Counted from the first letter of the stretch, positions 1 to 59,719 are shown. The stretch is 64,000 nucleotides of DNA from Hamiltosporidium tvaerminnensis FI-OER-3-3 (GCA_022605425.2 CM061254.1:1-64000), one strand, 5' to 3'. Notes: a model not told the origin generated them from the letters alone. Translations and numbers: made by a program.

Positions 1-10
1 ACGTATTGCT
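1..10 (+). other. Oxford Nanopore ligation adapter remnant (technical, not genomic)
   Basis: ACGTATTGCT matches the 3' end of the ONT adapter (...CAGTTACGTATTGCT) and directly precedes the telomere. Confidence 0.85.
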
Positions 11-668
11 CCTAACCCTAACCCTAACCCTAACCCTAACCCTAACCCTAACCCTAACCCTAACCCTAACCCTAACCCTAACCCTAACCCTAACCCTAAC
101 CCTAACCCTAACCCTAACCCTAACCCTAACCCTAACCCTAACCCTAACCCTAACCCTAACCCTAACCCTAACCCTAACCCTAACCCTAACCCTAACCCTA
201 ACCCTAACCCTAACCCTAACCCTAACCCTAACCCTAACCCTAACCCTAACCCTAACCCTAACCCTAACCCTAACCCTAACCCTAACCCTAACCCTAACCC
301 TAACCCTAACCCTAACCCTAACCCTAACCCTAACCCTAACCCTAACCCTAACCCTAACCCTAACCCTAACCCTAACCCTAACCCTAACCCTAACCCTAAC
401 CCTAACCCTAACCCTAACCCTAACCCTAACCCTAACCCTAACCCTAACCCTAACCCTAACCCTAACCCTAACCCTAACCCTAACCCTAACCCTAACCCTA
501 ACCCTAACCCTAACCCTAACCCTAACCCTAACCCTAACCCTAACCCTAACCCTAACCCTAACCCTAACCCTAACCCTAACCCTAACCCTAACCCTAACCC
601 TAACCCTAACCCTAACCCTAACCCTAACCCTAACCCTAACCCTAACCCTAACCCTAACCCTAACCCTA
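11..668 (+). repeat. Telomere, (CCCTAA)n / (TTAGGG)n, about 110 units
   Basis: Uninterrupted CCCTAA array at the contig start, in the orientation expected for a left chromosome end. Confidence 0.99.
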
Positions 669-1195
669 CAAACCATAGGCCGTTCTCTAAACTTTCACAT
701 GAACAAATATTACAAGTACTGGATGGGAAATCCCCATTCACACCGTCAAGATACATTTTTATTTACATTAACAATATTAAAGTCAATAAAATAAAATTCT
801 ACAAACTTGCGATAGAGTCTCTATCCGAAGGAACAAGTCGATATATTATCAACATGGATTTCATAAACGATGAAACTGCTGAAATTATCTGCCGAGAAGA
901 CAAAAAAGAAATAATAAACGAAGCATTTATCAAACTTTCTAGTAATTCATTAAGTAGATCACCAGAAATTGACAATAATGGAACTTTACACATCTGCATG
1001 CTTTTTGAAAGAATGAGAAAGATAATCAACAGAAGTACAAACACAAATTTAAAACTAAGACAATTAGCAGTAAGTATTCTATATACAAAGAGATCTGAAC
1101 TGCTCGACGTGTTAAAAAGTGTTAACATTGAGGCCAACGATGTTAATATGGAACCACGATCGGGATCTCTCAGTGATAACCATATAAATGGTTAG
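668..1195 (+). CDS. Retrotransposon ORF1, N-terminally truncated by the telomere (first internal ATG at 854)
   Basis: The frame of ORF 854-1195 stays open for 62 more codons back to the telomere (TNHRPFSKLSHEQILQVLDGKSPFTPSRYIFIYINNIKVNKIKFYKLAIESLSEGTSRYIIN-MDF...). Its C-terminus aligns with the element 2 remnant, and it overlaps the ORF2 ATG. Confidence 0.75.
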   Translation, partial: TNHRPFSKLSHEQILQVLDGKSPFTPSRYIFIYINNIKVNKIKFYKLAIESLSEGTSRYIINMDFINDETAEIICREDKKEIINEAFIKLSSNSLSRSPEIDNNGTLHICMLFERMRKIINRSTNTNLKLRQLAVSILYTKRSELLDVLKSVNIEANDVNMEPRSGSLSDNHING

Positions 1196-3932
1196 AACAA
1201 TTGGATTTATAAACGTGGGCGGTTTATCAAACTTGAAAATAGAAAAAATAAATGAAATTCTTATAAAACACAAACCCGATATACTATGCATTGCTGAGAC
1301 ATGGAGGAATAATATTTTTCCGCTACACAATGATTATAGAATAGTGGCCGTTAAGTCAGCCATAGAGGTTACGAACAGATACGCAAAAAAGGAGGGAATG
1401 ATAATTATATCTAAAAAACATATGGAAGTAAGAAAACTTGAAAACATTACGACGGCAGGCCTCTGCATTAAACACGAACAGACAATACTGGTCTTTATTT
1501 ATAGAGAACATTCAAGCTCTGATGAAAAAATATTAAACGAAGAACTTAGTTCATACACAGATGCAAATATTATCTGCATTGGCGATTATAACTTGGAACA
1601 AAGAGCAAATCTAGAACAAGACGTGCTGAATAACCATGCTAAGTACGGCTTAGCAGAGGTAAACTTGCACACGAAAACTTTTATACATAACGAAAAAAGC
1701 TCTACCCCAGATAAAGTTTTCGCTAATTGCCCAGTCATTACGGATATAAAAACTATAGAAAACATAAATCATAAGCTAATAGTAGCACTTCTTCCAAAGG
1801 CACAGAAATGTGAGCCTCCTAAATACAAAATAAACTTGATTAAAAATTCTGATATAAGAAATATGATAACAAAGAAAATAGAACAATATACGGAAAGGTC
1901 TATAAATATCTTAAAATTTCTAAACGTTAACAATAAATGCTTACTACTACATTCCATACTTATCAAGAGTATGCGAAGAATTGAACGTCGAGAAAGACTT
2001 CATGACCGTTCAAATCCTATTATTCAACATGTAAGAAAGCTGCGCGATAAAGCAAGGAAAACAAATGCGAAAGAATATGATGAATTTAGACGCGAGGTAA
2101 AAAAGCTTGCTAAACGATTTGATAACTCAAGCCTACCACGAACAAACTTAAGATACACAAGCTTACAAGCTTCTGAATTGGAAAAGGTTATCTTATTCAA
2201 TGGCAAGACTGAACGAAAGCATACTAAAAATATAAGAGAATTACTAGATAGTTTTATCTTAGACGGAAATATAAAAGAAACAGAGAAAACTATAAAAGAA
2301 ATTAAAAATTTCTACGGAAAAACCAATATGAAACACAATTACAACCAACAAGACATGATTACAAGCTTCACACTGGCAGAAGTTTCTGCTATGATTAAAA
2401 ATCTGAAATCGGGAAAGTCGGGTGGGATTACAGGAATCAGAAATGAATTTCTTAAAATATGCCCAGAAAACTTTATAAATGAACTTACGAATCTATATAA
2501 TGCAATATTAGATACACAACAAATCCCCGACTCTTGGAAAAGGCATAAAATCAAGCCCATTCCGAAGGATAAAGATAATTTCAGACCAATCGCCTTAATT
2601 GAACAAACGAGAAAGCTTTTTGAGAAGCTATTATTGACAAAGATAGACATAAAGTTGCATAGACAGCAAACAGGTTTCAGAGCAAAACATTCCACTATTA
2701 ATCACGCACTTGCATTAGATACAATTCTAAGACACGTTAACGGAAAATATATTTGTGTAACACTAGACATAAAGAAAGCGTATGACAGTGTCTTTAGAAA
2801 AAACTTGTATAAGAAACTTCTGAGACAACAAAACTTTTCGATCAAAGATACCACATTGATTGCAAACTTGATAGAAAACAACAGCTATACTATATGTCAG
2901 AAAAATACTGGTAATATAAAATTTAAAACGGCTGCCTTGGGTCTACCTCAGGGAAGTATTATCTCTCCTATACTATTTAATATCTTTATAAACGACATTA
3001 TTTCTTATATTCCGAAAAAATATAGATACCACATTTTCTTATACGCGGATGATATAGTCATCTACTCGACATGCATGGTGGCTCTAAATACCATAATTGA
3101 CGGACTTTGCAAACATGCGGCACACAATAGATATTTATTTAATCCCAAAAAATGTTTCTATAATGCAACGAAAGATTTGAACATATTTATATATGGAAAG
3201 AAAATTGAAAAACAGAACCCGCTTAAATATCTTGGGTTTTATTTCAATAACCGCTGTGCCGATACAAACGAGACTTTAAAGACCATACGGAAAAAATCTA
3301 TAAAGGCTGCGGTTATTACAAACAGAGCATTTAAAAGATCAGAATTTAATTCCTTTCATAACTTACCACAACTAAAGCTACGTGCATATAACATGTACGT
3401 TCGTCCACATATAGATTACCACGCTGTACTCTTAGGATGCAATACAACTTTTAACACTGCGGCAGACCGGATACAAAAAGGTGTTATTAAATTTATGTAC
3501 AATATATACTACCGAACCCCTTCCAAGATTATCTATGCGCTATTCCCGATAGAATCAATTCCCCAGAGAGTTGAAAGACTAAGATATAGTCTTGGCGAGA
3601 GAATACTACAAATGAAAAAGACGATAATAAGATTTGCCTTTCTTAGACTATTCAGTAAGAACATCAGAAATATCAAGAACGGAATTAAAACAATTAGAAA
3701 AAAATTTCCTAATATGGACGCTAAAGAAAGATTTAAGAAACTGAACAAAGAAAATCTTAGGGTTAATTTTACTATTTTCCAAGAAATTGAACTTTTAAAA
3801 AAGTATAATTTTCAAAATAGCAACAAAGCCAATTTTGAAAGAATAACAAGAATCTTGAGTCCATTTAGAAAAGAAAAAGAAATTTCAGAAATTTTAAACT
3901 TATTTCAAATGGCAAATATTGCCCGCCCATAG
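1188..3932 (+). CDS. Non-LTR retrotransposon ORF2: APE-type endonuclease plus reverse transcriptase (914 aa)
   Basis: APE motifs: INVGGL, PDILCIAETW, IGDYN, TF..STPD, INH. RT motifs: KSGGITGI.NE, WK..IKPIPK..FRPIAL, QTGFR, LDIKKAYDSV, GLPQGSIISP, YADD, KYLG. C-terminal Y..YVRP.IDY. No RNase H or CCHC knuckle seen. Confidence 0.97.
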   Translation: MVRTIGFINVGGLSNLKIEKINEILIKHKPDILCIAETWRNNIFPLHNDYRIVAVKSAIEVTNRYAKKEGMIIISKKHMEVRKLENITTAGLCIKHEQTILVFIYREHSSSDEKILNEELSSYTDANIICIGDYNLEQRANLEQDVLNNHAKYGLAEVNLHTKTFIHNEKSSTPDKVFANCPVITDIKTIENINHKLIVALLPKAQKCEPPKYKINLIKNSDIRNMITKKIEQYTERSINILKFLNVNNKCLLLHSILIKSMRRIERRERLHDRSNPIIQHVRKLRDKARKTNAKEYDEFRREVKKLAKRFDNSSLPRTNLRYTSLQASELEKVILFNGKTERKHTKNIRELLDSFILDGNIKETEKTIKEIKNFYGKTNMKHNYNQQDMITSFTLAEVSAMIKNLKSGKSGGITGIRNEFLKICPENFINELTNLYNAILDTQQIPDSWKRHKIKPIPKDKDNFRPIALIEQTRKLFEKLLLTKIDIKLHRQQTGFRAKHSTINHALALDTILRHVNGKYICVTLDIKKAYDSVFRKNLYKKLLRQQNFSIKDTTLIANLIENNSYTICQKNTGNIKFKTAALGLPQGSIISPILFNIFINDIISYIPKKYRYHIFLYADDIVIYSTCMVALNTIIDGLCKHAAHNRYLFNPKKCFYNATKDLNIFIYGKKIEKQNPLKYLGFYFNNRCADTNETLKTIRKKSIKAAVITNRAFKRSEFNSFHNLPQLKLRAYNMYVRPHIDYHAVLLGCNTTFNTAADRIQKGVIKFMYNIYYRTPSKIIYALFPIESIPQRVERLRYSLGERILQMKKTIIRFAFLRLFSKNIRNIKNGIKTIRKKFPNMDAKERFKKLNKENLRVNFTIFQEIELLKKYNFQNSNKANFERITRILSPFRKEKEISEILNLFQMANIARP

Positions 3933-3940
3933 TACTACCC

Positions 3941-3962
3941 CACAGCTTTTGGCCAAGTTGTG
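3941..3962 (+). promoter_or_regulatory. 3'-UTR stem-loop with UUGGCC loop (element 1)
   Basis: CACAGCTT-TTGGCC-AAGTTGTG: 8-bp stem with one G-U pair, 9 nt after the stop codon. Confidence 0.7.
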
Positions 3963-4335
3963 AGAAACGTTAAAGCAAACTTAAAAAAAAAAAATAAAAA
4001 ATAATAAAATAAAATAATAGATATACTCATAATGAAAAATATTTTATAACGTAAAAACAAAAATAATAAAATAGAAAAGAAAAACCAAAGATATTTTAAT
4101 TACTTAAACCAAAATGAGTATATCTTATACGTAATAACCACTATTTTGAAACTGTGAGAAAAATTAAATATTTTTTATAACAAAAGAAAAATATAATAAT
4201 TTACTTTATTTGAAAACCATGTGAAAATTTTTTAAGCAATCGACGGATTCGGAATCATTAGCAAAAAATTGATATTTTTTTATTTGCTAGAATATGAACT
4301 TGCAAGAAACCTTCAAAAACATTAAGAAACGTTAC

Positions 4336-4473
4336 GGCAGGGAGCCCGAAAGGGACATTACTGCCATATTTTTATAATTTAAAAATCACCGGAGTTTTAT
4401 GAAATATGTTGACTACCCCGGTCAACATATAATTGTAGTGAGGAGGGGGTGTTGCTCCATTGAGTCTTTCTGG
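4336..4473 (+). other. Structured RNA module (GAAA-tetraloop motif plus a two-hairpin domain), copy 1
   Basis: GGCAG-GGAG-CCC-GAAA-GGG-ACATTA-CTGCC. Perfect 10-bp hairpin at 4404-4430 and a second hairpin at 4442-4458. Confidence 0.6.
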
Positions 4474-4538
4474 AATTTAAATACATTTTTTGTTTTAAAT
4501 TTTCAGTTTGTTAAATTATTTAAATAAAATCCATTTTC

Positions 4539-4697
4539 CCTAATAACAATAATCGTCTTAAGAGATTAGTCATTAAACTGATACAAAGTAGGGGAAGGGA
4601 CTTGTTGAGTATGTTAGAAAGCCTTAACATTCGGGCCAAAGAAGTTAAGGAAGAAGATGCACCTGAAAAAAACCTAGATCTTACCTATGAGTTCTAA
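4539..4697 (+). CDS. ORF1 C-terminal remnant of element 2 (5'-truncated; absent from the ORF track)
   Basis: NNNNRLKRLVIKLIQSRGRDLLSMLESLNIRAKEV aligns without gaps to element 1 NTNLKLRQLAVSILYTKRSELLDVLKSVNIEANDV. Both overlap the ORF2 ATG in the same +1 register. Confidence 0.75.
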   Translation, partial: PNNNNRLKRLVIKLIQSRGRDLLSMLESLNIRAKEVKEEDAPEKNLDLTYEF

Positions 4698-7428
4698 AAT
4701 AGGTTTTATTAACATAGGAGGCTTATCAACAATAAAAATTACTAAAATAAATAACTTACTACAATTACATAAACTAGACATCCTGGGTGTTGCAGAGACA
4801 TGGCGTGATGAAATAATTCCCCTGGATAACAACTACAAGATTCTGACAACAAAGCCATCATTAAGAGTAGACAGTAGGTATTCTAACAAAGAAGGGATGA
4901 TAGTTATAACGCGGAAGAACATTAAAGGAGAGATAATTGGAGAGATTACGGATTTTGGAATTTCAATAAAATTCGATAATCATATCCTTGTCTTTATCTA
5001 CCGTAGCCTGTCTAGCAATGATCATAATATAATAAAACCTGCAATACATGAGTTAACAAATCAAAAAATAATAATACTTGGAGATTATAACCTCGAGCAA
5101 ACTCGTGAATTGGAAGACAAAGTTTTGAATAATCATATGAACTATGGTCTATACGAATTAGATCTCCATGCAAACACATACAAACATAAGAACAAAATAT
5201 CTTCACCTGATAAAATTTTTTCTAACACCCCAATAAGAACAGATGCCATAGAAATTATAACAATAAACCACAAATTGATAATAGCAGAAACCTTTGAATT
5301 GCCTACTTCAGCCATTCCCGGGTATAAAATAAATTTAATAAAAGATAACAAAATAAGAAGTAAAATAACAAAGAGAATTGAAAAACTTGTTACAAAAAAT
5401 AAAGTTATATTGCAAAACCTAAATATTGAGGAGAAATGTAACTTCCTACACAAAATATTACTGAATGCCACGAGAATAATTCGGATCGTAGATAAGAAAA
5501 CAAAAAGAGGTAATCCAATAATTCAACACACAAGACAATTACGAGAAGCCCACAGAAACATACACACTGATACTTATAAGAAACTATGTTCTGACGTTAA
5601 AAAATTAAGAAGAAACTTTATTGAGGAAGAAATGCCTTTGGGTAACTTAAAACATGTTGGTTTAGAAGCATGTGAAGTGGAAAAAATAATAAAGTTCTAC
5701 GGAAAGGCTCAACCCAGAACAAATCTTTACCCTAAAGACTTGATAGACAAATTTGTACTAGATGGAAGGTACAATAAAGTAGAAAACACAATACAGGAAA
5801 TTGAAGATTACTACAGTAAAAATATTGAAAAAGGAGAATTTCGTGAAAACAAGATAACAGAGATCACGCTAGAAGAAGTTCTTAACAATATTAAAAGTCT
5901 TAAATTAGGCAAATCCGGAGGAATATCGGGTATAAGGAATGAATTTCTTAAGATATGCCCTAAAAACTTTGTTTCCGAACTTACAGATTTATTCAATAAG
6001 ATTATAGTAGACCAAGAAATTCCATCGTCATGGAAATTCCATCGAATCCAACCGGTACCGAAAGGAAACGACGACCTCAGGCCCATATCGCTTATTGAAG
6101 AAACAAGAAAACTTTTTGAAAAAATCATCTTAAGCAAATTTAATGTCCAACTTCATAAGCAACAGGCTGGTTTTAAGACAGGACATTCATCGCTTAACCA
6201 CGCGCTTGCACTCGACACACTCTTAAGACACAGCAACGGCGATATGATAAATGTAACACTTGACATTAAGAAAGCATATGATTCAGTTGACAGAAATAAA
6301 CTTTACAGGAAACTAATAAAACAGCAAAAATTTTCTATTAGAGACACAAAACTTATAGCCTACCTTATAGAGAATAACAAATACACTCTGTGCTCAAACA
6401 AAGCCACATCATTAGTGAAGACTGCATCAATAGGACTACCGCAAGGTAGCATTATTTCACCAACATTGTTTAATATATTTATTGATGATATTATTCACTT
6501 TATACAGAAAAGATTTAGACAGATGGTATTCCTATATGCTGACGATATTCTAATATGCGCACCAACGGTCCAAATTGCCCAAAATATCATATTGGGAATG
6601 GAAAGGCACTCAACGATTAATAATTACAGATTCAATCCGGATAAATGTTACTACAATACAACAAAAGATATCTGTATCAAAGTATACAACACTAATCTTA
6701 CAAAACAGAGCCCTCTAAAATACTTAGGTTTCTTCTTTAATAATAGAGGGGCAGACACGTTAAAATCTACCAAGATCATAAGACAGAAAGCTGTTAGGGC
6801 TGCAGTAATAATGAATAAAGTCATGACAAAGAGCATATTTTACAGAGAAGAAGATAAATTCAGAATGAAACTAAGAGGATATACTACGTTTGTGAGACCA
6901 CACATTGATTACTTTTCGCAATTATTAGGCTGTCAAAAAACCTTCCTTGATCAGGTAGATAGAATTCAGAAAGGTATAATAAAATACCTATTTAAGATTT
7001 ACTATCGAACACCCTCAAAGATAATTTACGCACTCTTCCCAATAGAAAATGCTTACCAAAGAGCAATTAGATTGAGGTACAATATAGCGTATAAACTAAA
7101 AAGAGCAAAAAACACAACTATTAGAAAATTATACTATAGGTTTAACTCAAAGAACCTGAAAAACATGAAAAACAATTATGTCAGATACCAGAAAATTTAC
7201 AAAAATGAAAGCTTTAAGATTAAATTAAAAAGAATTTTAAAAGAAAATTTAAGGTTAAACTTCAGAACATTTAGTTGGAGTAACACACTAAAAAAATACA
7301 ATTTCAAAACATGCACTAAAGACGAATTCTCACAGTTTTTAAATGTTATACGAACAGAATACAAAAGAAGAGATCTTGGTGATATTTTATTAAAATTTAT
7401 CTTGATATACATAAGCCTCCCACATTAA
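4687..7428 (+). CDS. Non-LTR retrotransposon ORF2: APE-type endonuclease plus reverse transcriptase (913 aa)
   Basis: INIGGL, DILGVAETW, LGDYN, SSPD, INH, LRPISL, QAGFK, LDIKKAYDSV, GLPQGSIISP, YADD, KYLG. Collinear with 1188-3932. Confidence 0.97.
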   Translation: MSSKIGFINIGGLSTIKITKINNLLQLHKLDILGVAETWRDEIIPLDNNYKILTTKPSLRVDSRYSNKEGMIVITRKNIKGEIIGEITDFGISIKFDNHILVFIYRSLSSNDHNIIKPAIHELTNQKIIILGDYNLEQTRELEDKVLNNHMNYGLYELDLHANTYKHKNKISSPDKIFSNTPIRTDAIEIITINHKLIIAETFELPTSAIPGYKINLIKDNKIRSKITKRIEKLVTKNKVILQNLNIEEKCNFLHKILLNATRIIRIVDKKTKRGNPIIQHTRQLREAHRNIHTDTYKKLCSDVKKLRRNFIEEEMPLGNLKHVGLEACEVEKIIKFYGKAQPRTNLYPKDLIDKFVLDGRYNKVENTIQEIEDYYSKNIEKGEFRENKITEITLEEVLNNIKSLKLGKSGGISGIRNEFLKICPKNFVSELTDLFNKIIVDQEIPSSWKFHRIQPVPKGNDDLRPISLIEETRKLFEKIILSKFNVQLHKQQAGFKTGHSSLNHALALDTLLRHSNGDMINVTLDIKKAYDSVDRNKLYRKLIKQQKFSIRDTKLIAYLIENNKYTLCSNKATSLVKTASIGLPQGSIISPTLFNIFIDDIIHFIQKRFRQMVFLYADDILICAPTVQIAQNIILGMERHSTINNYRFNPDKCYYNTTKDICIKVYNTNLTKQSPLKYLGFFFNNRGADTLKSTKIIRQKAVRAAVIMNKVMTKSIFYREEDKFRMKLRGYTTFVRPHIDYFSQLLGCQKTFLDQVDRIQKGIIKYLFKIYYRTPSKIIYALFPIENAYQRAIRLRYNIAYKLKRAKNTTIRKLYYRFNSKNLKNMKNNYVRYQKIYKNESFKIKLKRILKENLRLNFRTFSWSNTLKKYNFKTCTKDEFSQFLNVIRTEYKRRDLGDILLKFILIYISLPH

Positions 7429-7436
7429 AATGAAAC

Positions 7437-7460
7437 GGTTGACTATTGGCCTAGTTAACC
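7437..7460 (+). promoter_or_regulatory. 3'-UTR stem-loop with UUGGCC loop (element 2)
   Basis: GGTTGACTA-TTGGCC-TAGTTAACC: 9-bp stem with one G-U pair, 9 nt after the stop codon. Confidence 0.7.
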
Positions 7461-7488
7461 TACAACACACAAAAAAACAAACACAAAA

Positions 7489-7702
7489 GGCGGGGAGCCA
7501 GAAATGGACGATACCGCCATATTTAAATATTTGGCTTGATTTACACTGCGAGAAGAGATTGGGGACTAGTAACGAGCGCGAGTTGGCCATGGGAGTTAGA
7601 CCCCCCAAAGACACAGTTGCATTAAAGGGGGTCTTATTGCATATATGAGCGCGGATCATTAATACCCTTTATGTAAGGGCTATACAGTAAGAGATAAGTC
7701 AA
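7489..7702 (+). other. Structured RNA module, copy 2
   Basis: GGCGG-GGAG-CCA-GAAA-TGG-ACGATA-CCGCC. AGACCCCC (7598-7605) is complementary to GGGGGTCT (7627-7634), and TTGGCTT/AAGTCAA could form a closing stem. Confidence 0.6.
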
Positions 7703-8039
7703 TCGTAAAGAGGTGATAGTTTTATTAAAAACTAGCAGTGTGCATAAAAGGTGATGACGACTGACGAGTAGACAAGGATGTTGTTTTCTTGCCTATTAAG
7801 GGTTGTTGTATGATGATCTTTAGGAGTTTTAGCTTGATTGAATATAGCCTGAGCCTAAAAGGAGTTAATTCCTGCTGAATAAAGTATGACAATAGGACCC
7901 CTTGTTTGATGTATAACATAGTCATCGGGTGGTCTTAAGGCTAGGAGAGTAGTTTAGTTAGTTTAAGACTTGTTAATAGTGACCCTAAAACTCTATAGTA
8001 AAGGTGGGTTAATCATTTCTAGAACTTTCTAGAAATATA

Positions 8040-10520
8040 AAAATATTTAAATAAAATTTCTTTTTCCTACTTAAAAAGTTTTTTTAATCTTATTTTATTG
8101 TTTTATTATAATTTCAAATTTTTTATATCTTAATGTTAAATTAAAATTGTTTCCTATCTAAAACATTTTTTATATTTCTTGCAATAATACGTACCTCTTT
8201 TTTATTTTTTTTACACGAAAATTTGAATTTTTTTTATTAAGAACTTAATTTGAATTTTCATTAAAAGTTTTTACCTGATTTTTATATTATCTATTTTGTC
8301 CGTCATAGAAATATTGAACTTATGCTGGTATATGTGTTACACATAAGCTTTGTTTCTATTTAAGATAAATAGTGTTATACTCCAATTTCGTTTTTTTTAT
8401 TTACATGATACTATTTTTTATATTTAGGTATATAAATCAATTATTTACATGTCTCAAAAATATATTTGTTCGTTACCTAAGTCCTTAATTCGGAAAACTT
8501 TGGTTTTCCTATTTTTTAGTGAGCATTCTTGATGTTTTTCTTGGATTAAGTCTAATTGTATTTAAATTTAAATTTTTGATTTGAAAGCAATAAAATAAAA
8601 TATTTTAATGTATTTTACACTTACACTAACTAATTTTTTAGTTCAGACAATATTACATTAAACTTTAAATTTTACAAAACATAAATGGAAAAACCATATT
8701 TTATCTAATTATATTCTGATAGCCTGTATTCAGTTATGGAATCTTCTTAATTCGACATATAAATCTTTAAATTTGTAATATGTAAGGTCAATGGCCATTT
8801 TTCACTCTCTAAACTACCATTTTTCTTTTTATATGAACCTTCTAACATTTACGTAACTAATAATCTCTTTTGGCATATTTTTATATTTTAGTGCCTCTGG
8901 TTTGTTTTTAAAGTTAGAATTTCATTGGTTTTTTGTCTTTCTTAGATTTTCTATATAATATATACGTTTTTAAAAATTCGTTCTAAAAGTGTTTGCTAAA
9001 CCGAAGGTTTGAACAATCGTTATAAAGTCAGTATAGTCTAAATTGGTGCCTCGTAATTCAGTTTGTGTCGTTTTGCAATAGCTTAGATTTATATTCTTTT
9101 CTTTCTTAATCAGCTGTTATTTTTTTCTTAGAACTTTTAATTATTTTTATTTAGTTTTTACTTTATCTAATACATGGTTTACTTTATTTTTCAAAATTTT
9201 ATTTTTTTAAACTCTAGACTGGTTTTTTATAACAATTTTGTATTTTATAAGACGGTTCGAGTATGGTTTGAAAATTTGTTTTTAAAGAAGGTTTAAAGAA
9301 TGCCTAAACTTTCGTTGGTTTTAGGTGTTTGACATTCTTTTAAAATAATTTACTTTTCTTAAGAGTTTTTATGTGTTTTTTTTTAATTTTTTAAACTATT
9401 TTCTAAATTTATTAGAATGATTTTTACTTATTTACTGGAATTTTTTAGTTGTAAAGTTTTTTATTTCTTTTAACCTATACTTACAATTTTTTTAAGTTTT
9501 TTATATGTTTTTACGTGTTCTTTCCCGGTTTTTTACGTTTTCTCTTAAATTTAGCTGTTTTTTCGTGTTTTTTTACAGCTTTTGGAATTTCCTAAATTTT
9601 TTATTTTTTTTTTAAAACTTTTTAAATTTTCAATTTTATAATATTTAGAATTTTAGACTTCCTTTATGTTTTATCTACTTATTTATTGATCGGTATATCT
9701 TCCGAGTGTCTTTTAACGTATTAATAAGAATTTTTTTTGTAAAACTGTATACTAAATGAACAATTATTGGTTTTTTGACAAAAATTTGAAGATTTTTTTA
9801 AAAAATTATCATTTTTAGAATTATAGCTCGGTAAATTTAGAAAAATTACCCCCGTAAAATTATTAAAGCCTAAACCTTGTAAAAATTACTTTTAAACAGT
9901 GCAGGTTTAACATATAGAATTTATTATATATGTTATATATTACTTTACTTTATTTTATTTTGATTTTATCTTTTTAATAGAGCTAGAATTTTATTCTCGC
10001 TACGAAATTCGAAGAATTTCTTAAAAAAAAAATATTTTTGGAAAAAATATTTATGTTACCATTCTTAATTACTATTTTCTGTTTTTATTAAGGAAAAATT
10101 TTGGAAAAATTTTTTAAATACAGTAAATAAAAATATAGATTTGGAAGATTTATGTTTGGTTTAATAAATTTCGAATAACTTCCATCTTTCAACAAAAATT
10201 ACTGTAAACTCTTAATTAAGATTGAATTATCCTTTTTTATAACTTAAATTTTAAGTTCTTTACTCAAAAATAGAAAAGTTAAAGCAAATATTTGCAACTA
10301 AAGGTGATCTCTCTTTAAATTTAAAATATTGTAAGATTTTAACTTGATTCTGTATGTAATAGTAGTTATTTTTTGCTGGTTTAAATTTAATTTTTATTTT
10401 ATAAAAAATTACTTTTTATTTTTATATCCTATTAAATATGTTTTAAACTAACTGACAGCATTCATCTTTAAGGAAATTGAATAAAATATAAATCGTAATT
10501 CAAATAATGGTAAAAAACAT
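8040..10520 (-). pseudogene. Probable decayed coding region (unidentified)
   Basis: Strong T skew on + (A-rich minus strand), short protein-like open stretches, and a hydrophobic start MFFTII*ITIYILFNFL at 10520. Many stops; no family recognised. Confidence 0.25.
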
Positions 10521-11247
10521 ATGTTTTTTGACTATAGTAAAAATAGAAACTTATATTTTTATAAGTATTATTAATTTACCTAAAAAGGAAATACCTTTGT
10601 AAATCTGTAAATATCTTATAAATCTTACTTATATCTAGTTTTACCAACTTAAAAACCCTATAGAGAATTCAGTAATGAATTGTACTAATAAAATTTTGAT
10701 TCAAATTTAGGTTTGTTTACACAATTAAGGAAATTTTGGTTTTCGAAAAAAGTAAATTTAGTTTTGCATGTTTTGAGTTAAAAAGTTACATTTTCTTCAA
10801 ATTTTATTTTTTTTTAAAAAAAATTCGAAGAATGTTTTTTGTAGTATCAAATTTTTGTTGAAAAACTATTTATGTACGTCAATTTTGAAATAAATCAACA
10901 AACCTATAGATTATTATGTTTCTTTTCGAAGAAAAGAAAGCGAAGGCAAGTAATATAGACACTTTTTGTATATATTTAATAAATATTCGTGATAAAATTA
11001 TTATTTATCATTTAAGCTAAAGAAAATAAGTTATACGTACAAAAAATAAATAAATTTTTTATTTTTTCACTTGTTAGATACGGATCATAATGGTATTGTG
11101 GATATCTGACAGGTTAAAGCCTTTATTGATATACCTTGGAATTTTATTCTTTAATAAAATACAATTTATTGACTTTACTTTTCGAAAACCATATACTTAT
11201 TTTTTCTTTAATACTTTTACTTTTCCTATTTAATATATTTTGAATAA

Positions 11248-11435
11248 ATATTCTCAATGAGAATATCAAAAGTGTCTCTCTAATAAAGTTTAAGTATAAT
11301 TGAGATTCTCGAAGAGAATATCAGAATTGAAGTTCATTTAAAAGACATAGGAGGGATATTCTCGAAGAGAATATTAGAATTGTATTATATTTAATGTATT
11401 ATTAATGTATATTTTCGAAGAGAATATCGGAAATG
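11248..11435. repeat. Four palindromic ~27-bp repeats with unique 26-28 bp spacers (period 53-55 bp)
   Basis: Consensus ATATTCTCGAAGAGAATATCAGAATTG at 11248, 11303, 11356 and 11409. Confidence 0.8.
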
Positions 11436-11797
11436 CAAAACTTTTTTAATTTTTATTATTTAAAATGATTTTACATTATTATTTTTTTTGATTAAGCAAT
11501 GACATAGGTAAAAGAAATTTAAAGAAATTTAGAAAGAATTTATTTGTCTATGTGAATTCATGAAATGATATTTTTGAAGATAGTAAAATATTTTTATAGG
11601 CGAGTTTTGTTTTAATTAGGTAAAATATGATTTGTAGGGTATTTATTTTTTTACAATATATTTAGCCTCTCTCTTAGAGATGAGTAAGTTAATAGAGATC
11701 TTATCAAGCTTTAGGAACGTATCATTATTATCTAAAAATTTGCAATTGGTTTAAAAAAAAAATATAAAAATATAAATATAGGTGAATTTTTAATATC

Positions 11798-12230
11798 GTG
11801 GCATCTTCTACTGTGGTACTCTTACTATGTCTATGGGTTAGGGATTATCTATCTCTTAGTAATAATCCTCCGATACCCTGATATATTTCTTTTTCACCAT
11901 ACTAATGTAGAAGCCATGAAACGCATGCCACAAATACGGAACGATTTCGTTCTTACTCTAATATTCGCAGCTGAATGTGCTTTTACTCTTACTATCTACG
12001 CTGATATGGTTTGTTAAAGGGCTTATGTAAGATTATTTGCATAAGTCTGGACATAAATACATAGGGTAGTAAAAAACTAACTCGTTCGATCTCGTATAAC
12101 AGTCGATTTTACTGCAATAAGTGAATTTATTCACTTATGAAAATGTTGATATATAATCGTATTAACATCAATACCTGTTTTACAGTATCTCTAAGGCAAT
12201 GAGCTCGATAACGGGACAATATTGCCTATT
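11798..12230 (+). ncRNA. Candidate structured non-coding region
   Basis: Nested stems 11798-11817/11896-11931 and hairpins at 12019-12048, 12117-12138, 12143-12168 and 12195-12226. The mismatches are G-U on the + strand. Confidence 0.4.
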
Positions 12231-12350
12231 TAGATGGAATACTTTTTTAAAGAATGTATATAAAGCAAGCATTTTTAGATTTAAAAACTTATAATACAAT
12301 AGGGCCTCTTCTATATGAAACTAAATAGAAATTTCGAATTATCTATTTAT

Positions 12351-12488
12351 CCCTAATCTTACCAACCTAACTTGCTCTTTGTGTATCTAACCCTCTCCTA
12401 ATAAACCTCAAATCAAAATCAAATATTGTATATGTCTTTGGAAAAACTAATTTCCGTTTAAATAAATGTGTTCGCCCTAACCCCTAAC
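12351..12488 (+). repeat. Degenerate interstitial telomere-like hexamers
   Basis: CCCTAA at 12351, CTAACCCT at 12387, CCCTAACCCCTAAC at 12475-12488. Confidence 0.5.
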
Positions 12489-15066
12489 TATTTTAAGAAT
12501 CCAAATGATGTATGGATTTACCAAAAGTTTACTCATTAGTAAAAAAACAAAAATTCTCAATTTTTAAATACATTTAGCTTTATTGAAGATTGAAAAAGTA
12601 GGGAATCTAATTTTTCTGCTAAATATTTTTTTTAAATTTTAGTGTTAAATATTGACCAAATTGATATTCTACAATCTTAAATCTCTTTTTCTTTATTCAA
12701 TTTTATTTTGAGTCTAAAATACAAATATTTTGTTCGAGAATGAATCGACATTATTAGCACAACGTGAAGTAACCACAATAATAATTTCAATCTGAAACAT
12801 AAATCAAATATATTTTCAATATTATTTATACAAACTATTTATCTGAGATTATAATTTATTTTGATGAGTCGCTTTGAGTGCTTACGAGAGATTCTCCAAG
12901 GACTTTTATGTTTTTTTCTAATATTGTGTCTTTTTTATAGGTTTGTGCTCAGCCAATTTTTTCTGTGCAAACTCGAAATGATATTTTATAAATAACATAG
13001 GATAGGTCGTTGGAATATATCTTGAAAATTGTAAGAAACAATTTCATTTAAGAATGGGCTTTGAAATTTAAATCAAATCAGTATTTTCGCAATATTTGGA
13101 ACTTCTGAGTTTAGTCTGGCTAATTTGGCAAGAGAACTACTTTGAGAACGTACTATCTTTTGTTCAAATATACATCGAAGCCCTATAGGTTTATTTTTTA
13201 CATGCTTATTAGATAACGAGTTTTGAAGACACTTTGGGCAAATTTTGAAAAAATTTGTGATTTAGAAAATCTTAAATAGAACATTGACTAAAAAGAATGC
13301 AAAAATAAAAAAAATATAGATGGTGCAGAAAGATTAAATGCTCATTTGAACTAAATAAAAAGAGTTAAAATAAAATATCGTTTTAAAAACATTTCGTTGT
13401 ACAATTTTGTATTGGAAATATTTTTTTTGCCTCTGTACTGATACAATTTTATAATATTACAATTTTCAATTGCATTTTTGTCGATTATAATGACTTCGAG
13501 TGTTTTTTTAAGGTGGACAAAACTAAGATGCATTAATTCTCTCGCTTATAAAAAAAAATATTTAGAACGATTAATGCTTAATAGATTTCAGAAGTTTTAT
13601 TTGAATTTTAAGTTATATTACAAGTATATAAGAAAAAACGATTATAATGTTAACATTTGGACGTTGAGTCTATAGTAAGAATTTTTGTTTGAGAAGAACT
13701 AAATTACGCCTTTGTTTTTTCAAAGTCAAAGGTCACTCAATAAAGTTTTTGTGAGCTTGTATAATTTTGAAGTTTACCTTCTAGAGTTTTTATTTTACGT
13801 ACAATTTGATTTATTTGTGTAAATAAATTATATCTAAATCGCAAAAATAAAATACTCTTTTTATCAAGATTCTGTAATTAAGGCGGAAACAATTCAGTAA
13901 AAAAAAATATTTATGTTAGGTATCAATTCCGAATCTAAAGATTTAGTTTACATTGAATAAAATTATATATTGCTTGTTCATATACATAAATTTTCTTGTT
14001 TAGGTTCGCGTATTTAAATTGAAGATTTGAAATTTTTATTGCTGTTGCTTTAAAATTCATTTAAATGTGTTTCTGAATTAGGTTCGAATGTTGTATCAAC
14101 TATCATCTGATTAATCAATTTAAATATAATTTTTTGATTATTTGTCAATAAGCGTTTGTTCTTTTTTTCTAACCTCCAAAAGAAATCTAAACCTAAGGAA
14201 TTTAGAAAATAAAGAGTTTGAGTAAGACAATTGCTTCATCTGAATTGAATGCTTAGGGGTAGAGTATGATTCTTTCAGACTTAATCATATTTAGTTTTTT
14301 TATTTACTAAAGTATTGCAAAAACCAGCTTGGATAAACAAATTTTAACCTTTATTCAAATTTCTTCAAGGATATACAATTTTTTTCAATTTCACTACTTA
14401 CACCTTGGTATGTAACATATTAAATATTTAAATAACTAACCGAACTATGCTCGACAATAATAAAACGTTTAAATTGAACATTATACTGATATGATATCCG
14501 TAAAATGTAACTACAAATTCTGATTTTCAGTTTCTGAAATACGCATAAATATTTGTGTAAGTTTTTGTTTTTTATCACAAAATTATTTTATAAAAGCTAT
14601 TTCAATCTATATCTTATTGTAAAATTAAACGGAATATCTGTTTAATTTTAATGGTTTATGGTTGGAAATTTAATTAAAAAAACCCAAAAGTATTTATTAG
14701 TGTGTTTTTTATTTCTTAAATAATAACTCTTCTTGTAAATTGTTCTTATTTAAGTTCATTTGAAAAGCTATATTATTTTTTGCATTTTTAATAATTTAAA
14801 ATAATTGCTAACGGAATTAAATTTAGAATATTATTTTTAAAACTTCCGCCACGCAAAACGCTGAGCAAATAGTAAAAAGAATTAAATACTTGCAGTAAAG
14901 ATACTCATAATAATTGGATATTGAAAGTATTGATTGTCTATGAATTAATACTTGCAATATATTAAATTTCTTTTGTAGAATATTATTCTTAGAAGTCAGA
15001 AAAAAAATATTTGATTCAGATTAAAGTTAATAAAAGATATGAACAGTAAAAAATTCTTTAATCTAT

Positions 15067-15729
15067 AAAATATTACATAGTATCAAAAAATAGTTGGGAG
15101 TGTTTCTTTATTTCATGATTCAATGTGATTCTAGGTTTAAATAAATAACTGCTAACATCAACACTCTTTTGGTACCCCTTAATAACTTACACCTCAAAGC
15201 CTTTCATTTAAAAAGTGAGCAAAATGACATTAATGGCCGAGGAAGGTGTCTGAAGTGTGATCTTAAGTGGAAGCCAATCTTAGACTACCCAATGATTATG
15301 CAATATTCGAAATACTCTACATTCTCTGAATCTAATGAACTTCTGGTTAAGACATATTTTATGCCTTACATAGATTACACAGATGTGCGACGCCAAGCCG
15401 ACGGGTATATCCGCTACTTAGCTTTTCCTTCTTTAAAGGGTTTTTTTATTGCTAAGTCTTCAAACTCGAGTGAACAAGCCTAGGTTTCGATGCTTTTACT
15501 CGCAATTACCTAGGAATTCGGTTTCGGCCAAGTTACATAAAAACTACAAAATGGATTTGTATAAAAAGTTTCTAAGTTTACTAGACCTTCTTCTGCGAAT
15601 ACAAATCCGAAGGAACAACTAAAATTCTAGTGTGGGTTGATTTTCACAAAAAAATATAACATTGATCTTATTAATTCCATATAGTCATTGCTAAGTAAAA
15701 AGTTTTTTAGGTGGTTATCTTTTCTCCAC
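15067..15729 (-). mobile_element. Family A non-coding interspersed element (diverged copy)
   Basis: Collinear blocks shared with 38217-38943 (CAAAGCCTTTCATTT, TACTCTACA, GCTAAGTCTTC, GTTACATAAAAACTACAAA, GTGGTTATC). Confidence 0.8.
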
Positions 15730-17734
15730 GCTTCTTCATTAATATTTCATATAAAATCGCAAATCAATAGAATTTAACATTTAAAAATTTTGCGTTATTC
15801 TTTATTTTTTTGTGCTATAATAACGAATCATCATAAGCTGATTTCAGTTAAGTTTTGGATTTAACCATTTTGAAGATAATCGATAAAATTTTATTTTTAC
15901 CTCTGAAATTTATTGAAAAATGAATTTATTAAATCTAAAAGTGTTTTTGCTCTTTTGAAAGTTATATATTAAAATATTTAATGGGATAAGTCTCTCATAA
16001 ATACTACTTGTTCTGAAAGTTTACAATTTTTTAGGACATCTTTGTTGTCAAATCATGAAAATCATAGAAAATAGCAGTAAAAATAAAAACTTAGGTGCTT
16101 TGAGGATTTAGAAAACAAAACACTTCTAGAATTTAAAATATTTGCCCTTCATATGAAATGAAAAATTATTTTACAAATTTCTTGTATTGTGGTATATTAT
16201 TAACATCCAAATTTGAATATTAAGTCTTGATATTGCTTATATTTCAAAATAAGTCTATATTGCATATAGTATTTGTAAATTAAATAGTTATTCTACAACT
16301 AAAGTGAAAGAAAAGTCGTGTATAAAATTATTTTAAGTATGAAAGGGCGATTATGTGTCGTATTAGGAAATATTAGATGCGTTGAACTCCTTGGACTATT
16401 TAAAAAAAAAATATTGAAATTTTTAGAGAGCTAAGTGAGCTCGAATATGAAACCTGTAAATAAAATACATATCACATTTAGAATAAGACTAAGGTCTTGG
16501 AATTTAGGAAATCTTGTTATATGTAAAAAAAATTGACAAGAAAATCTAACTATGCAATAAAAAGCAGGAATCCTACAATGAAATTTCTATAAAATTACTT
16601 TACTGTTTTATGTGTATACGATACTTTCAATATAGATAAATAAATATAGTTCTAACCGAAATTTTTTTCAGCTATATTATAGAAAATTTATTAAATTGTA
16701 AACGAAGCATACCATTTGTAAATCTCAATAAATTATATAATTTATTTTTCGATCCGATATAAAAAAAAATCTTTAAACAGTTAGACTGGACTTTATTTGG
16801 TTTAAATGCCCCCAGAACTACTTCATTTTTATAACGGTCTATTCAAAATTTATAACGAACTATAAATTATATTTTTAAAGAAGTTCTTGAAAATCCGCAA
16901 GCAAAACATAACAAAAAAGATAAAACTTGGTCTAGAAACATGATATTCGGCACAGATATGTATTTTTTGGTAAAAAATTTAGTAAAAAAGCATATTAAAG
17001 TCAGAATCACTCCACGGGATTTGCTTTAAATTAGGCAAACAAAAAATTTACGCAAATGATTTGTGGCCAGAGAAACTTGATTTTATTATAAAGTTAGGTT
17101 GACTTATTTCTTATATTTTATTTCAAAATGGTTTATTAGCTGATATAATAAAAAATATATTTGATGTATGATGTCGCTGTTAGAATATAGGCGGTCATCA
17201 AGTCGATTTTACTTTAAGATACAATTGAAGTTTCTTATTTTATTCAAAGGAGAGGAGCTATGGTAAACAAAATATAAATCCAGTTTTAAAGAAAGCATAA
17301 CGAGGGATAGATGTAGGAAATATAAACACAGTGGATGTAGTTTTAATTTAAAATATTTTCAAGGATGTTTTAGTTTATTCTTCGAATATTCTATTTAAAT
17401 CATTAATTAAAGATTGAATGAAAATGAAAAAAATTTCAAACCAAAATATAAAAATCAGTCGAACCATAATGAAGCTAGCTGTATGGAAGTGGAAAAAATC
17501 AAATAAATTAGAAAATTTTTAACAACCAACTAGTCTAAAATCCAAAAAATTGTGACAAATTAATATTATTTGGTTTTAAGTTTTAATATATATTGATGAA
17601 ACTAAAATTTTACAAAGAACATATCAGAACAGTTATCTTTATACAAAAAACAAAAATTTTCCTAAAAACCTCTAAATGAATATTTTTTGAGGTCATATTA
17701 GACATAATAAACTTAAATTATAGAAAATCAAATA

Positions 17735-18690
17735 TTTCTATTTTCATTTCGACATATTTTCCCCATAAACTTCTTCCAGGGCTTTAATGAAAATTTTTTA
17801 GCCACACTTTTAAGTTAGGTTTGAAATTTTTAGAAAGCATTGAAATCGTTCGAATCATTAACTAAGTCAACTCTAACACCAGACCTATCAAATCTTCCAG
17901 ATCGACCTACACGATGAATATAAGTTTCCACCTTTGGTATTCCTTTAACTATTGGAAGATCAAAATTTATAATTAGGTTTACCTGTGAAATATCCATTCC
18001 TCGTAAAAATTTATTTGTTGAAATCAACGTAAGAGCCTTTGCAGTTCTAAAATCATGCTCTAACTTTTTCTTATGCTGCCTTTTAATATCCCCATGAAGA
18101 CATGCTTTTTCATGAAGATCAGCCCCTAATTCTTTTCTTAAAACCTCAACCATATGTTTGGTTGCAACAAAAATTATAGACTGCCCTACTCTTAAATATT
18201 CATATGAAGATTTTATTGCTTTCATTTTTTTTCTTTTCTCTCAGTTTCTAAATAATATGGTTTTATTTCTTCGGGTTTTAAATTTTCCTTTTCATACATA
18301 CAAATGGCTTCCGGCCAAAAATTTTTAATCACTTTTTCAAACGTGGATAGAAAGTAGCAGAGAAAATATTTTTCTTGATTTTTATGACATTTTTAAAATT
18401 CTATATGCATGAGAACCAATACCATCTAAAACCGCATCCGCCTCATCAATAACTATAATTTTAACTGTTGGAGCTTTTTTATTATCCATGCTACATAACT
18501 TCAAAATACCACCCGGACTTCCAACAATAATTTCTTGATTCCCATATTCTACATCCGGTTTTACAATAAAAACTTATAATTTTGGCTCTAAAAGTTTAGC
18601 AATCACACCAAAAACCAGTTGCTTCAAAACTCTTGTTGTTGTCGGGTTACTGCTTGCAAACTACGTTTAGAAACACATTTTTGAAGAAGA
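17735..18690 (-). pseudogene. DBP5: DEAD-box RNA helicase Dbp5/DDX19-like, frameshifted pseudogene
   Basis: Minus-strand fragments in different frames: IIVGSPG, VIDEAD (18436-18447), FSATF, VGQSIIFV, LHG, STN..RGMD, NFDLP, YIHRVGRSGRF. The N-terminal Q/Walker A region was not found. Confidence 0.8.
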
Positions 18691-58240: not shown

Positions 58241-59719
58241 TTACATTCTAGTCATATCACCGATTCTATCTGAATATTCCTCTAAATCTACGTCTTCTCT
58301 ATCATTAAGCATTTCAAATAATGCAATTGTATTTTCATTATCTTCTTCATTTTCATTTGTATTTGTGAATTCAAATGGTGAATAGACATAGAAACAGTTC
58401 TCGATACCGGAACAGAAGATGTACGGATATAAAGGATGCATGATAGTTGTATTAATGTTACCTCTGAATCCTTTTAAAACATTTGAATCTGTAAAAATGG
58501 CCGGATTACAATTTTTAAAAGAATATTTAGAAAATATAGAATCTTTATAATTTATGGTACTTTCATAAGTTTTTAATTTTGGGAATATTGGTTGCTCTTT
58601 ATATTGAATGTTTTCATAACCAAATGAATTAATATTGCTTGTAATATTCCTATTTACTGTATAATCTAGAAGATTGTAAGATCTATATTTGGTATTTGTA
58701 GTGTATGAATTATTTTTTAAATTAGTGCTTTTCAAATTTATATTTTTTGTCGAATCGTATGGTTTTAAATCGCTAATACTGTTTTTTTCTATATAATTAA
58801 TATTTCCGTTAAAGGAAATATTTTTATTGGAAGATTCATTTTTTACAATATTGTGTTTTTCTTTAAAAAAATCATGAAAAGAATTTTCTGGGTCGGGTGG
58901 AAATTTCCAGTAAATAACAGCTTTGTTATCTGAACCTGATAGTATAAAGGAGTCTGATGGTCCTCCAAAAGAATAATTCTTCATTGTACAAACGTGTTTG
59001 ACATTTTCATTATAAAAAATATGAGTAGGACTGGTATGTTCTTTAGAATAAAGAAGGGGAAGAAAATAAAAAGGAGAAACTAAGATGTACCTACCATTCT
59101 GGTTGAAAACGCAACTGGAGATAGAAAGTCGGTGATTTCTATTCTTGTATATGTTTGTATCGTAGATAAGTAAAGGAGCGCTGAGATTTCTTCTATCGAA
59201 TAGTTCCAATTTACCTTCGTTTCCAGAAATCACAAGAGTTGAATCGAAAGGATTAAACGAAAGTGAAGTTAGATTTTGGGATGTTGCCAACATCTTTATA
59301 CGTTTTTTTACTCTTTTATCGTACATAAATAGTCCATTTGTGGAAGCCACACCAAATATATTTGGTGAATTGGAACAAATATCTATTTTATGACATCTAT
59401 GACTTGATCTCTCGGTTTTATACTTAATTTTACACTTTACGGTATCATAAACATGTGCAAACCCATCCAAACTACAAGAAAATATTTCAGTATCCGACAT
59501 TCCAAACTTCAGCGAAAATACATTGTTTCTATGTCCAATCAACCTACACACTTCCTTACAAAACACATTGTCTAACAAATCATGCACAACAATTTTTTGG
59601 TCATCACTTCCACTAGCCAAATACTTTCCACTTTGAGATATTGATAAAGCATTAATACATCCACTATGACTGTAAACCTTCTTAAAATATTTAAACTGAT
59701 AGTTGTGTAACTCAAACAT
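58241..59719 (-). CDS. WD40-repeat protein, DCAF5/WDR22-like (DDB1-CUL4 associated factor)
   Basis: HSGCINAL..LASGSDD, GHRNNVF, FDRR (WDxR-like), CTMK.YSFGG..D.FILSGSD and LKG.R...N...CSGIE match the DCAF5/DCAF8 pattern. CCC motif upstream of the ATG. Confidence 0.85.
   Translation of the reverse strand: MFELHNYQFKYFKKVYSHSGCINALSISQSGKYLASGSDDQKIVVHDLLDNVFCKEVCRLIGHRNNVFSLKFGMSDTEIFSCSLDGFAHVYDTVKCKIKYKTERSSHRCHKIDICSNSPNIFGVASTNGLFMYDKRVKKRIKMLATSQNLTSLSFNPFDSTLVISGNEGKLELFDRRNLSAPLLIYDTNIYKNRNHRLSISSCVFNQNGRYILVSPFYFLPLLYSKEHTSPTHIFYNENVKHVCTMKNYSFGGPSDSFILSGSDNKAVIYWKFPPDPENSFHDFFKEKHNIVKNESSNKNISFNGNINYIEKNSISDLKPYDSTKNINLKSTNLKNNSYTTNTKYRSYNLLDYTVNRNITSNINSFGYENIQYKEQPIFPKLKTYESTINYKDSIFSKYSFKNCNPAIFTDSNVLKGFRGNINTTIMHPLYPYIFCSGIENCFYVYSPFEFTNTNENEEDNENTIALFEMLNDREDVDLEEYSDRIGDMTRM

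Follow-up and report, generated by a model that had tools for sequence, protein, structure and literature searches.

At the left end of contig C9 of the microsporidian Hamiltosporidium tvaerminnensis FI-OER-3-3 (GCA_022605425.2, CM061254.1; an assembly of 21,638,905 bases in 17 contigs), two diverged long interspersed nuclear elements (LINEs), here called A and B, lie head to tail directly beneath the telomere, with their 5′ ends toward the chromosome tip. We analysed the first 64,000 nucleotides of this contig (the window), together with the other members of the element A clade in the genome, and find it probable that these LINEs were added by target-primed reverse transcription onto chromosome ends carrying a vestigial telomere, and were then capped by telomerase. 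The evidence comes from the structure of the elements and their junctions, from their distribution over the assembly, and from a truncated host block that lies beneath the stack.

Both elements are non-LTR retrotransposons (LINEs) of the apurinic/apyrimidinic endonuclease (APE) type, with an N-terminal APE-fold endonuclease followed by a reverse transcriptase (RT). The second open reading frame (ORF2) of element A (668-4543, + strand) encodes 914 amino acids (1188-3932) and that of element B (4542-8069, + strand) 913 amino acids (4687-7428), and the two proteins are 50% identical across their entire length. An RVT_1 match with an E value of about 1e-31 was obtained for both, and the RT motif LYADDI (YADD) is present in the ORF2 alignment, while the Exo_endo_phos match is weak (20.5 bits, below the cut-off of 24.5 bits). 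Upstream of ORF2, A retains an ORF1 remnant (668-1195) that begins at codon 177 of 351, where the telomere starts, and B retains only about 57 ORF1 codons (tail at about 4542-4694). ORF1 carries a CxxC...CxxC finger, seen by eye, and gave nothing significant against Pfam. The 3′ untranslated region (3′UTR) of A (3933-4537) has its terminal AAATAAA at 4522 and is followed by a CCCTAA tract at 4538-4543, giving the terminus ...TTTTCCCTAA; that of B (7429-8065) has AAATAAA at 8049 and is followed by a CCTA tract at 8066-8069, giving ...TTTTTCCTA.

The truncation of A was determined by comparison with a 99.2% identical copy at C4:5933-9805, where ORF1 is complete (351 amino acids, C4:5408-6463). 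As ORF1 extends 528 nucleotides further upstream on C4, the window copy of A is truncated, and position 665, considered as the true 5′ terminus of A, was rejected. At the same place C4 reads ...catCCTA|CAAACC and the window ...CCCTAACCCTA|CAAACC, so that the four nucleotides CCTA within ORF1 (665-668, + strand) are shared, which indicates that the telomere array was seeded at a microhomology. Judged from this comparison, A was capped by de novo addition of a telomere at CCTA within ORF1. The array itself, (CCCTAA)n at 11-668 on the + strand, is a perfect repeat, (CCTAAC)109.7, in which the C-strand reads inward and the G-strand TTAGGG points to the tip. In the C4 copy, the 4.9 kb between the telomere and the ATG of A (C4:497-5404) contain no ORF of at least 100 amino acids. 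The final bases of this unclassified segment mimic an element 3′ end (TTAAACGAAAATTTTTCTTTCCC), and its one other copy, at C2:1784905-1788206, is 92% identical and polar. The closest copy of B, at C1:58905-62430 (92%), has the same two ends in other flanks. The A|B junction (4514-4970) is spanned with 0 differences by contigs from public runs of two independent studies, and it is therefore no assembly chimera. In two other public runs the DNA that follows the 3′ end of A is different, and B is seen in its C1-type context only.

The 3′ ends of the clade share a common anatomy. At about 20 distinct 3′ junctions we observed TAAATAAA (AAATAAA), 8-14 nucleotides, (T)CC and a telomeric tract of 2-18 nucleotides, after which other DNA follows directly; the elements end in ...TTTTCC(C) before the tract, and a 3′ A-run is absent. 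The tracts seen include CT, TA, TAA, CTAA, TAAC, TAACC, TAACCC, CTAACCCCC, TAACCCCTA and TAACCCTACCC, with TAACCCTAACCCTAAC in the assembly of another strain, and their proximal boundary falls at any phase of the repeat. The DNA behind the tract is the ORF1 ATG of a full-length element (three times), a truncated element, or non-element DNA; one junction between the partner module X (described below) and A, corresponding to window position 2893 of A, shares TA only. Truncated 5′ ends were found at ORF2 amino acids 452, 480, 561, 565, 639 and 736. Full-length elements begin 0-3 nucleotides from the ORF1 ATG, directly after the AAATTT-like and CCC-like 3′ end of the neighbour. A tight scan for the 3′-end motif gave 17 matches on the + strand and 1 on the - strand; a loose scan was unspecific (6 on the + strand, 12 on the - strand). 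Genome-wide, the pattern TAAATAAA-N6-16-CCTAACC gave 13 matches against 7 in a reversed control, and nine of the 13 are real element ends, the remainder being at chance level. No target-site duplications (TSDs) or nested insertions were seen at the junctions examined, and within the first 10 kb of the 17 left contig ends there is neither a CCCTAA array of at least three units beyond about 1.7 kb nor any TTAGGG array. An earlier note on this DNA, made from the window alone, had described two intact, diverged ORF2s directly inside (CCCTAA)n with their 5′ ends tipward, both elements cut inside ORF1, and a telomerase-type cap over the stack; these statements hold, and the variable truncation points without TSDs that it anticipated are found in the head-to-tail stacks. 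Its description of the 3′ junctions as free of an array or a TSD is also correct, but the junctions are not bare, as partial telomere units stand at the ends of both A and B.

The distribution of the clade over the assembly is equally uniform. All 53 matches to the ORF2 of A, in 18 clusters at 16 ends, have their 5′ end toward the nearest contig end and lie at most 183 kb from it. The same orientation was found for 32 of 32 matches to X (at most 190 kb from a contig end), for 23 of 23 matches to D, the body of the same partner element (within about 190 kb), and for all matches to the 3′UTRs of A and B, which are subtelomeric. The control set, 138 matches from RT families other than the element A clade, behaves differently: 69 of the 138 are polar, and 30% lie within 200 kb of an end, compared with a genome share of 31%. 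Since the control families are dispersed and unpolarised, the restriction to ends and the polarity belong to the element A clade, and not to LINEs in general or to the assembly. At least one such element is present at 21 of the 34 contig ends, and in 17 regions oriented from tip to centromere all ORF1 and ORF2 segments are on the + strand; the layout of the right ends rests on search coordinates and individual loci. Pairs with 99% identity occur in differing flanks for both A (C9 and C4) and the partner element DX (C9 and C12), and ORF1 and ORF2 are open in several members. The differing flanks, the intact ORFs and the sample-specific 3′ junctions of A point to recent activity, as far as can be read from the genomes. 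The other RT families gave more than 130 matches on all contigs and in both orientations, many of them frames of about 1250 amino acids with near-identical scores, which suggests that this dispersed LINE family may also have been recently active.

The second H. tvaerminnensis assembly and H. magnivora show the same junction anatomy, and outside these genomes the clade was found in the genus Hamiltosporidium only, plus two distant Logan proteins (P0010 and P0011), whose contigs stop about 50 nucleotides past ORF2 and hold no junction information. The best protein match is a 99% identical 'reverse transcriptase' of Hamiltosporidium tvaerminnensis, and the closest relatives beyond Hamiltosporidium are APE+RT(+RNase H) proteins from arthropods and metagenomes (E about 1e-25). 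Sequence matches in the PDB are limited to R2 and group II intron RTs and thus allow no clade assignment.

The stack in the window continues inward from B with the partner element DX (8070-12480, + strand), which is 4.4 kb long, AT-rich and without an ORF. It consists of the body D (8070-11757) and a conserved 723-nucleotide 3′ module X (11758-12480) with the terminus AAATAAATGTGTTCGCCCTAA; there are about 13 copies of D and 32 of X, all subtelomeric and polar. The 99% copy at C12:1696-5294 is 5′-truncated by 812 nucleotides, and the left telomere of C12 joins D at position 813 via a TA microhomology. DX often stands directly after members of LINE subfamily E (on C2, C13, C14, C16 and C3), as if the two were co-mobilised or read through together. 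A loose 26-bp tandem repeat (3.1 copies, 11305-11386) lies inside D, with no sign that it is anything beyond a degenerate tandem repeat.

Between the 3′ end of X and the host DNA there is a 12-nucleotide telomeric tract, CCCTAACCCCTA (12475-12486, + strand), and behind it an ancestral subtelomeric block (12487-18129, + strand) whose distal side is truncated. This block is 98% identical to part of the C13-equivalent contig of the second H. tvaerminnensis assembly (GCA_004325075.1), and further homologues lie on C17 and in H. magnivora; all three homologues extend about 4.8 kb further tipward than window position 12487. In the window these distal 4.8 kb are missing, and the 12-nucleotide telomeric tract stands in their place, followed by the stack (DX, B and A) and the telomere. 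Had the elements simply been inserted, the 4.8 kb would still lie upstream of them; terminal loss with subsequent additions requires the fewest steps, and the truncated block, compared in this way, argues for such a loss before the elements were added. On the C13 homologue of the other strain, a fragment of about 165 nucleotides (5437-5600), comprising only an F-like 3′UTR end, separates host DNA from a full F element. This fragment resembles the remnant of an element that was almost wholly eroded before the next addition.

Telomere arrays of 130-1700 bp are present at 13 of the 17 left contig ends, to which all counts of caps and telomere junctions refer, and all 13 telomere junctions differ in sequence. 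This, together with the capping of A and D at microhomologies, indicates that de novo telomere addition is common. TERT is represented by its RNA-binding domain at C4:420294-420659 (minus strand, 72 bits), within an open frame of 911 amino acids. A domain search of the genome gave no match to Ku, which is consistent with the loss of classical end joining, including Ku, in microsporidia (PMC6635534). On C1, the left telomere joins 105 nucleotides upstream of a 776-amino-acid RT-only frame (951-3281; whole feature 846-3281), which belongs to the unrelated dispersed family with full ORFs of about 1250 amino acids and also has its 5′ end tipward; from its junction, the C1 left end appears to be a second case in which a telomere was seeded within a LINE, here one from an unrelated family.

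The endonuclease of the clade is probably functional, as judged from its predicted fold and its conserved residues. An AlphaFold model of ORF2 residues 1-240 (predicted local distance difference test score 85) has as its top Foldseek matches the endonucleases (EN) of L1, TRAS1 (1wdu) and R1. The residues E37, Y105, D133, N135 and D175 are invariant among members that share just 40-50% identity, and the N of INVGG and H195 are retained wherever the sequence covers them. The Asp of the SDH motif is replaced, by INH or MNH within the clade and by TEH and TGH in the two Logan relatives. A search for domains in ORF2 detected no restriction-enzyme-like (REL) domain. TART and TAHRE, which are telomeric elements of Drosophila, likewise retain an APE domain.

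We infer that priming occurs on a natural 3′ end and not on an endonuclease nick, and likewise the order of events, which would be as follows. A chromosome end loses nearly all of its telomere, or breaks in subtelomeric DNA and gains a few telomeric bases. The RNA of an element, with its 3′ end about 10 nucleotides past AAUAAA and a CC(C)UAA terminus, would then pair with the leftover 3′ end of the G-strand (...TTAGG-3′), and the ORF2 RT would extend the chromosome end, so that the element would come to lie with its 3′ end on the centromere side and with its 5′ end as the new tip. This tip would be either full length, stopping at the ORF1 ATG because the transcripts are almost without a leader, or incomplete or eroded; a given 5′ truncation may thus reflect either incomplete cDNA or later erosion. 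Finally, telomerase would cap the new tip at a small microhomology, and repeated rounds would give polar head-to-tail arrays. The 2-18 nucleotide telomeric tracts at the 3′ junctions suggest that priming is telomere-templated, as in Athena, and not sequence-independent, as in HeT-A. For L1 with a defective endonuclease, addition to chromosome ends is reported in cells deficient in non-homologous end joining (PMC5537684).

The 3′ end of each element may, in addition, both terminate its own RNA and serve as core promoter of its proximal neighbour. Microsporidian transcripts have 5′UTRs of less than 7 nucleotides, with AAATTT-like and CCC start signals, and use AAUAAA as poly(A) signal (PMC2803860), and it is the lack of a 5′ leader, together with the resemblance of the neighbour's AAATTT-like/CCC terminus to these start signals, that leads to this idea. 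More tentatively, and at less than even chances, we suggest a wider interpretation, in which an APE LINE clade would have converged on Athena-like priming from vestigial telomeres as a back-up healing system beside telomerase in a lineage without Ku or classical end joining, with a 3′ terminus that combines poly(A) signal, primer site and core promoter of the next element, and in which self-sustaining arrays would have built much of the subtelomeres.

The main competing explanation follows TRAS and SART: the APE endonuclease would nick the G-strand of double-stranded telomeric repeats, the element would insert within the array, the distal repeats would be the cap, and the short tracts would be the proximal remnant or a trimmed form of it. 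The endonuclease fold, which matches LINE nucleases including TRAS1 EN (1wdu), the retained catalytic residues, the continuation of each 3′ junction in telomeric phase from the terminal CC and the fixed orientation relative to the repeat would all fit such a process. It is nevertheless unlikely, because all of the roughly 20 tracts are at most 18 nucleotides long, while random nicking of arrays of 130-1700 bp would leave hundreds of base pairs. Several junctions have only 2-4 telomeric bases or a 2-nucleotide microhomology, which is too little for a repeat-specific site, and for SART1 three repeats are the minimum (PMC7265360). At A|B, the youngest junction (A and its sibling copy share 99% identity), there is CCCTAA only, poly(A) tails are absent, and the structure of TRAS1 EN is no nearer to our model than that of L1 EN.

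Two further explanations concern the origin of the arrays. Ordinary LINEs could have piled up in subtelomeres, with polarity and stacking produced by duplication of blocks between ends and the cap by erosion and telomerase healing, all without end-directed integration. Copying of blocks among ends is indeed clear (window 8882-12481 and C12 are 99% identical), there are shared composites (C5/C6, C4/C15/C1 and C2/C13/C14), and healing at arbitrary sequence is common, including at the unrelated dispersed LINE of the C1 left end. Yet the roughly 20 junctions have differing flanks and a single polarity, with no nested or interrupted targets or TSDs seen; new elements join their predecessor precisely at its 5′ terminus, and a telomeric tract stands at every 3′ junction. 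The other LINE families of the genome are dispersed and unpolarised, and the junctions of A vary between samples. We consider this explanation very improbable, and the junction anatomy, as it appears in the assemblies, largely refutes it. Alternatively, many junctions could arise in a single event: on reaching the 5′ end of one RNA, or while still in its interior, the RT could switch to a second RNA at its CC(C)UAA 3′ terminus, or it could copy read-through transcripts that span neighbours, so that the arrays would overstate the number of separate additions. This would account for X|A′ at C5 and C6, where the DNA downstream differs, for E-LINE|DX at five ends and for the identical 5′ truncation of B at C9 and C1, and the terminator and promoter motif at each 3′ end is weak or ambiguous (PMC2803860). 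It leaves unexplained why telomeric tracts that differ in length and phase stand beside truncated host DNA, as well as the restriction to ends, and appears improbable as a full account; as it still needs an end-directed first step, it would modify end addition and not replace it.

Several observations weigh against end addition in its simplest form. The conserved catalytic residues suggest that the nuclease is used, and pure priming on chromosome ends would have no need of it. Composites with the same internal junctions (truncated B, X|A′, E-LINE+DX) recur in different flanks, and so call for read-through or composite retrotransposition, or for recombination; identical ends in two contexts, as for truncated B and some composites, mean that the junctions do not all go back to separate erosion events. 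The copies lie at a median distance of about 51 kb from the contig end, so that most arrays would be internal relics whose distal DNA arrived by other means. Moreover, at 6 of the 13 telomere-bearing left ends none of the searched elements was found, and at only 2 of the 13 (C9 and C12) does an element lie directly under the cap, which suggests occasional healing and not the main maintenance system. The role of the clade thus looks like occasional healing of ends with later reshuffling, and not routine telomere maintenance. Of what the earlier note proposed or thought decisive, the confinement to chromosome-end regions with one polarity, the presence of TERT and the integrity of the A|B junction are all borne out by the results above. 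Its central proposal, the successive addition of elements to chromosome ends, is retained in view of the polar stacks and the truncated block beneath them, but the telomeric tracts, the intact-looking endonuclease and the occasional role modify it.

Among the known systems, the Athena/Coprina elements of bdelloid rotifers, fungi and other hosts are the best match to the junction anatomy found here. They too lie at termini with the 3′ end facing the centromere and a short telomeric stretch at the 3′ junction, and their 5′-truncated copies are capped by telomerase repeats in genomes where telomerase coexists with them (PMC5537684, PMC8557442); the short 3′ stretch of Athena has been interpreted as a sign that the element was added to an uncapped end (PMC5537684). 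In contrast to the A clade, which are two-ORF LINEs with an APE-fold domain, they encode a Penelope-like RT without an endonuclease. The Jockey-clade telomeric LINEs HeT-A, TART and TAHRE of Drosophila resemble the A clade in their head-to-tail arrays with the 5′ end tipward, variable 5′ truncation and long 3′UTRs (600-640 nucleotides here), and TART and TAHRE also in combining APE and RT. In HeT-A the promoter lies in the 3′ end of the distal neighbour, an arrangement that, to judge from motifs, may also hold for the A clade. However, in Drosophila telomerase and short repeats are absent, the junctions are of oligo(A), and the LINEs are the sole means of end maintenance, whereas the A clade coexists with TERT and (TTAGGG)n caps, has telomeric tracts in place of A-tails, and plays an occasional role.

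Zepp of Chlorella, which has poly(A) tails, and GilM/GilT of Giardia both lack the junction of AAATAAA, CC and telomeric tract, and come from another host phylum. Like the A clade, they form one-direction head-to-tail LINE arrays between the subtelomere and the telomerase repeats, with long 3′UTRs and 5′ truncations that were read as terminal erosion (PMC5537684, PMC10088271). GilM/GilT are grouped with the CRE clade, with no APE type assigned (PMC10088271), and Zepp is classed as L1-like. The TRAS and SART elements of Bombyx and Tribolium (R1 clade) share with the A clade APE and RT, a fixed orientation to the repeat, the presence of telomerase and a similar endonuclease fold, but they insert inside long arrays by means of a repeat-specific endonuclease and have poly(A), whereas here the tracts are 2-18 nucleotides long, without flanking arrays. 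MoTeR, FoTeR and Cnl1 (CRE clade) are fungal telomere-associated non-LTR elements with the 5′ end tipward (PMC12857005); they differ in that their one ORF encodes a restriction-enzyme-like endonuclease at its C-terminus and in that they insert in telomere repeats, whereas the endonuclease here is an N-terminal APE.

The telomere-associated retroelements listed so far are SART/TRAS, GilM/GilT, Zepp, MoTeR, Tx1-1_ACar, Athena and HeT-A/TART/TAHRE, with no microsporidian among them (PMC10088271), and the known fungal telomeric cases are of the REL type (PMC12857005). Telomere-associated LINEs of H. tvaerminnensis are mentioned neither in the assembly paper (PMC10542269) nor in a study from 2025 that compares the genome architecture of microsporidia (PMC12449221), and a 2026 paper on Microsporidia sp. 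MB states that LINE repeats flank the telomeres, with nothing further (PMC13174016). The proposed addition of LINEs to chromosome ends, which has counterparts in fruit flies, rotifers and Giardia, is apparently unreported for the microsporidian phylum. Telomere-associated retroelements are a known class, in which the A clade is a new lineage that combines features in a new way.

As for the remainder of the window, the contig starts with a non-telomeric leader, ACGTATTGCT (1-10), which resembles a Nanopore adapter tail and is probably a remnant of one; if so, contig C9 would begin at a physical DNA end. Within window bases 1-16000 no Rfam family was matched. The region proximal to the element array is gene-poor: the 56 kb from 8000 to 64000 (20-30% GC) hold merely three ORFs of at least 150 amino acids, among them that of a WD40 protein at 58241-59719 on the minus strand.

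The combination found here brings together features that were previously separate: an APE LINE, as in TART and TRAS, telomeric tracts like those of Athena, polar stacks like those of HeT-A, and a functional-looking telomerase. Retroelements that add to chromosome ends are central to ideas on the relationship between telomerase and retrotransposons, and independent cases reveal which features recur. The host is an intracellular parasite that lacks Ku, its assembly is near-complete, and many of its isolates have been sequenced, so that existing population and long-read data can be used to ask how frequently retrotransposition, as against telomerase, heals ends, whether the endonuclease is needed, and whether subtelomeres, in which parasites often place host-interaction genes, are built by such elements. 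The clade also provides a concrete annotation for subtelomeric repeats of Hamiltosporidium that are otherwise unexplained.

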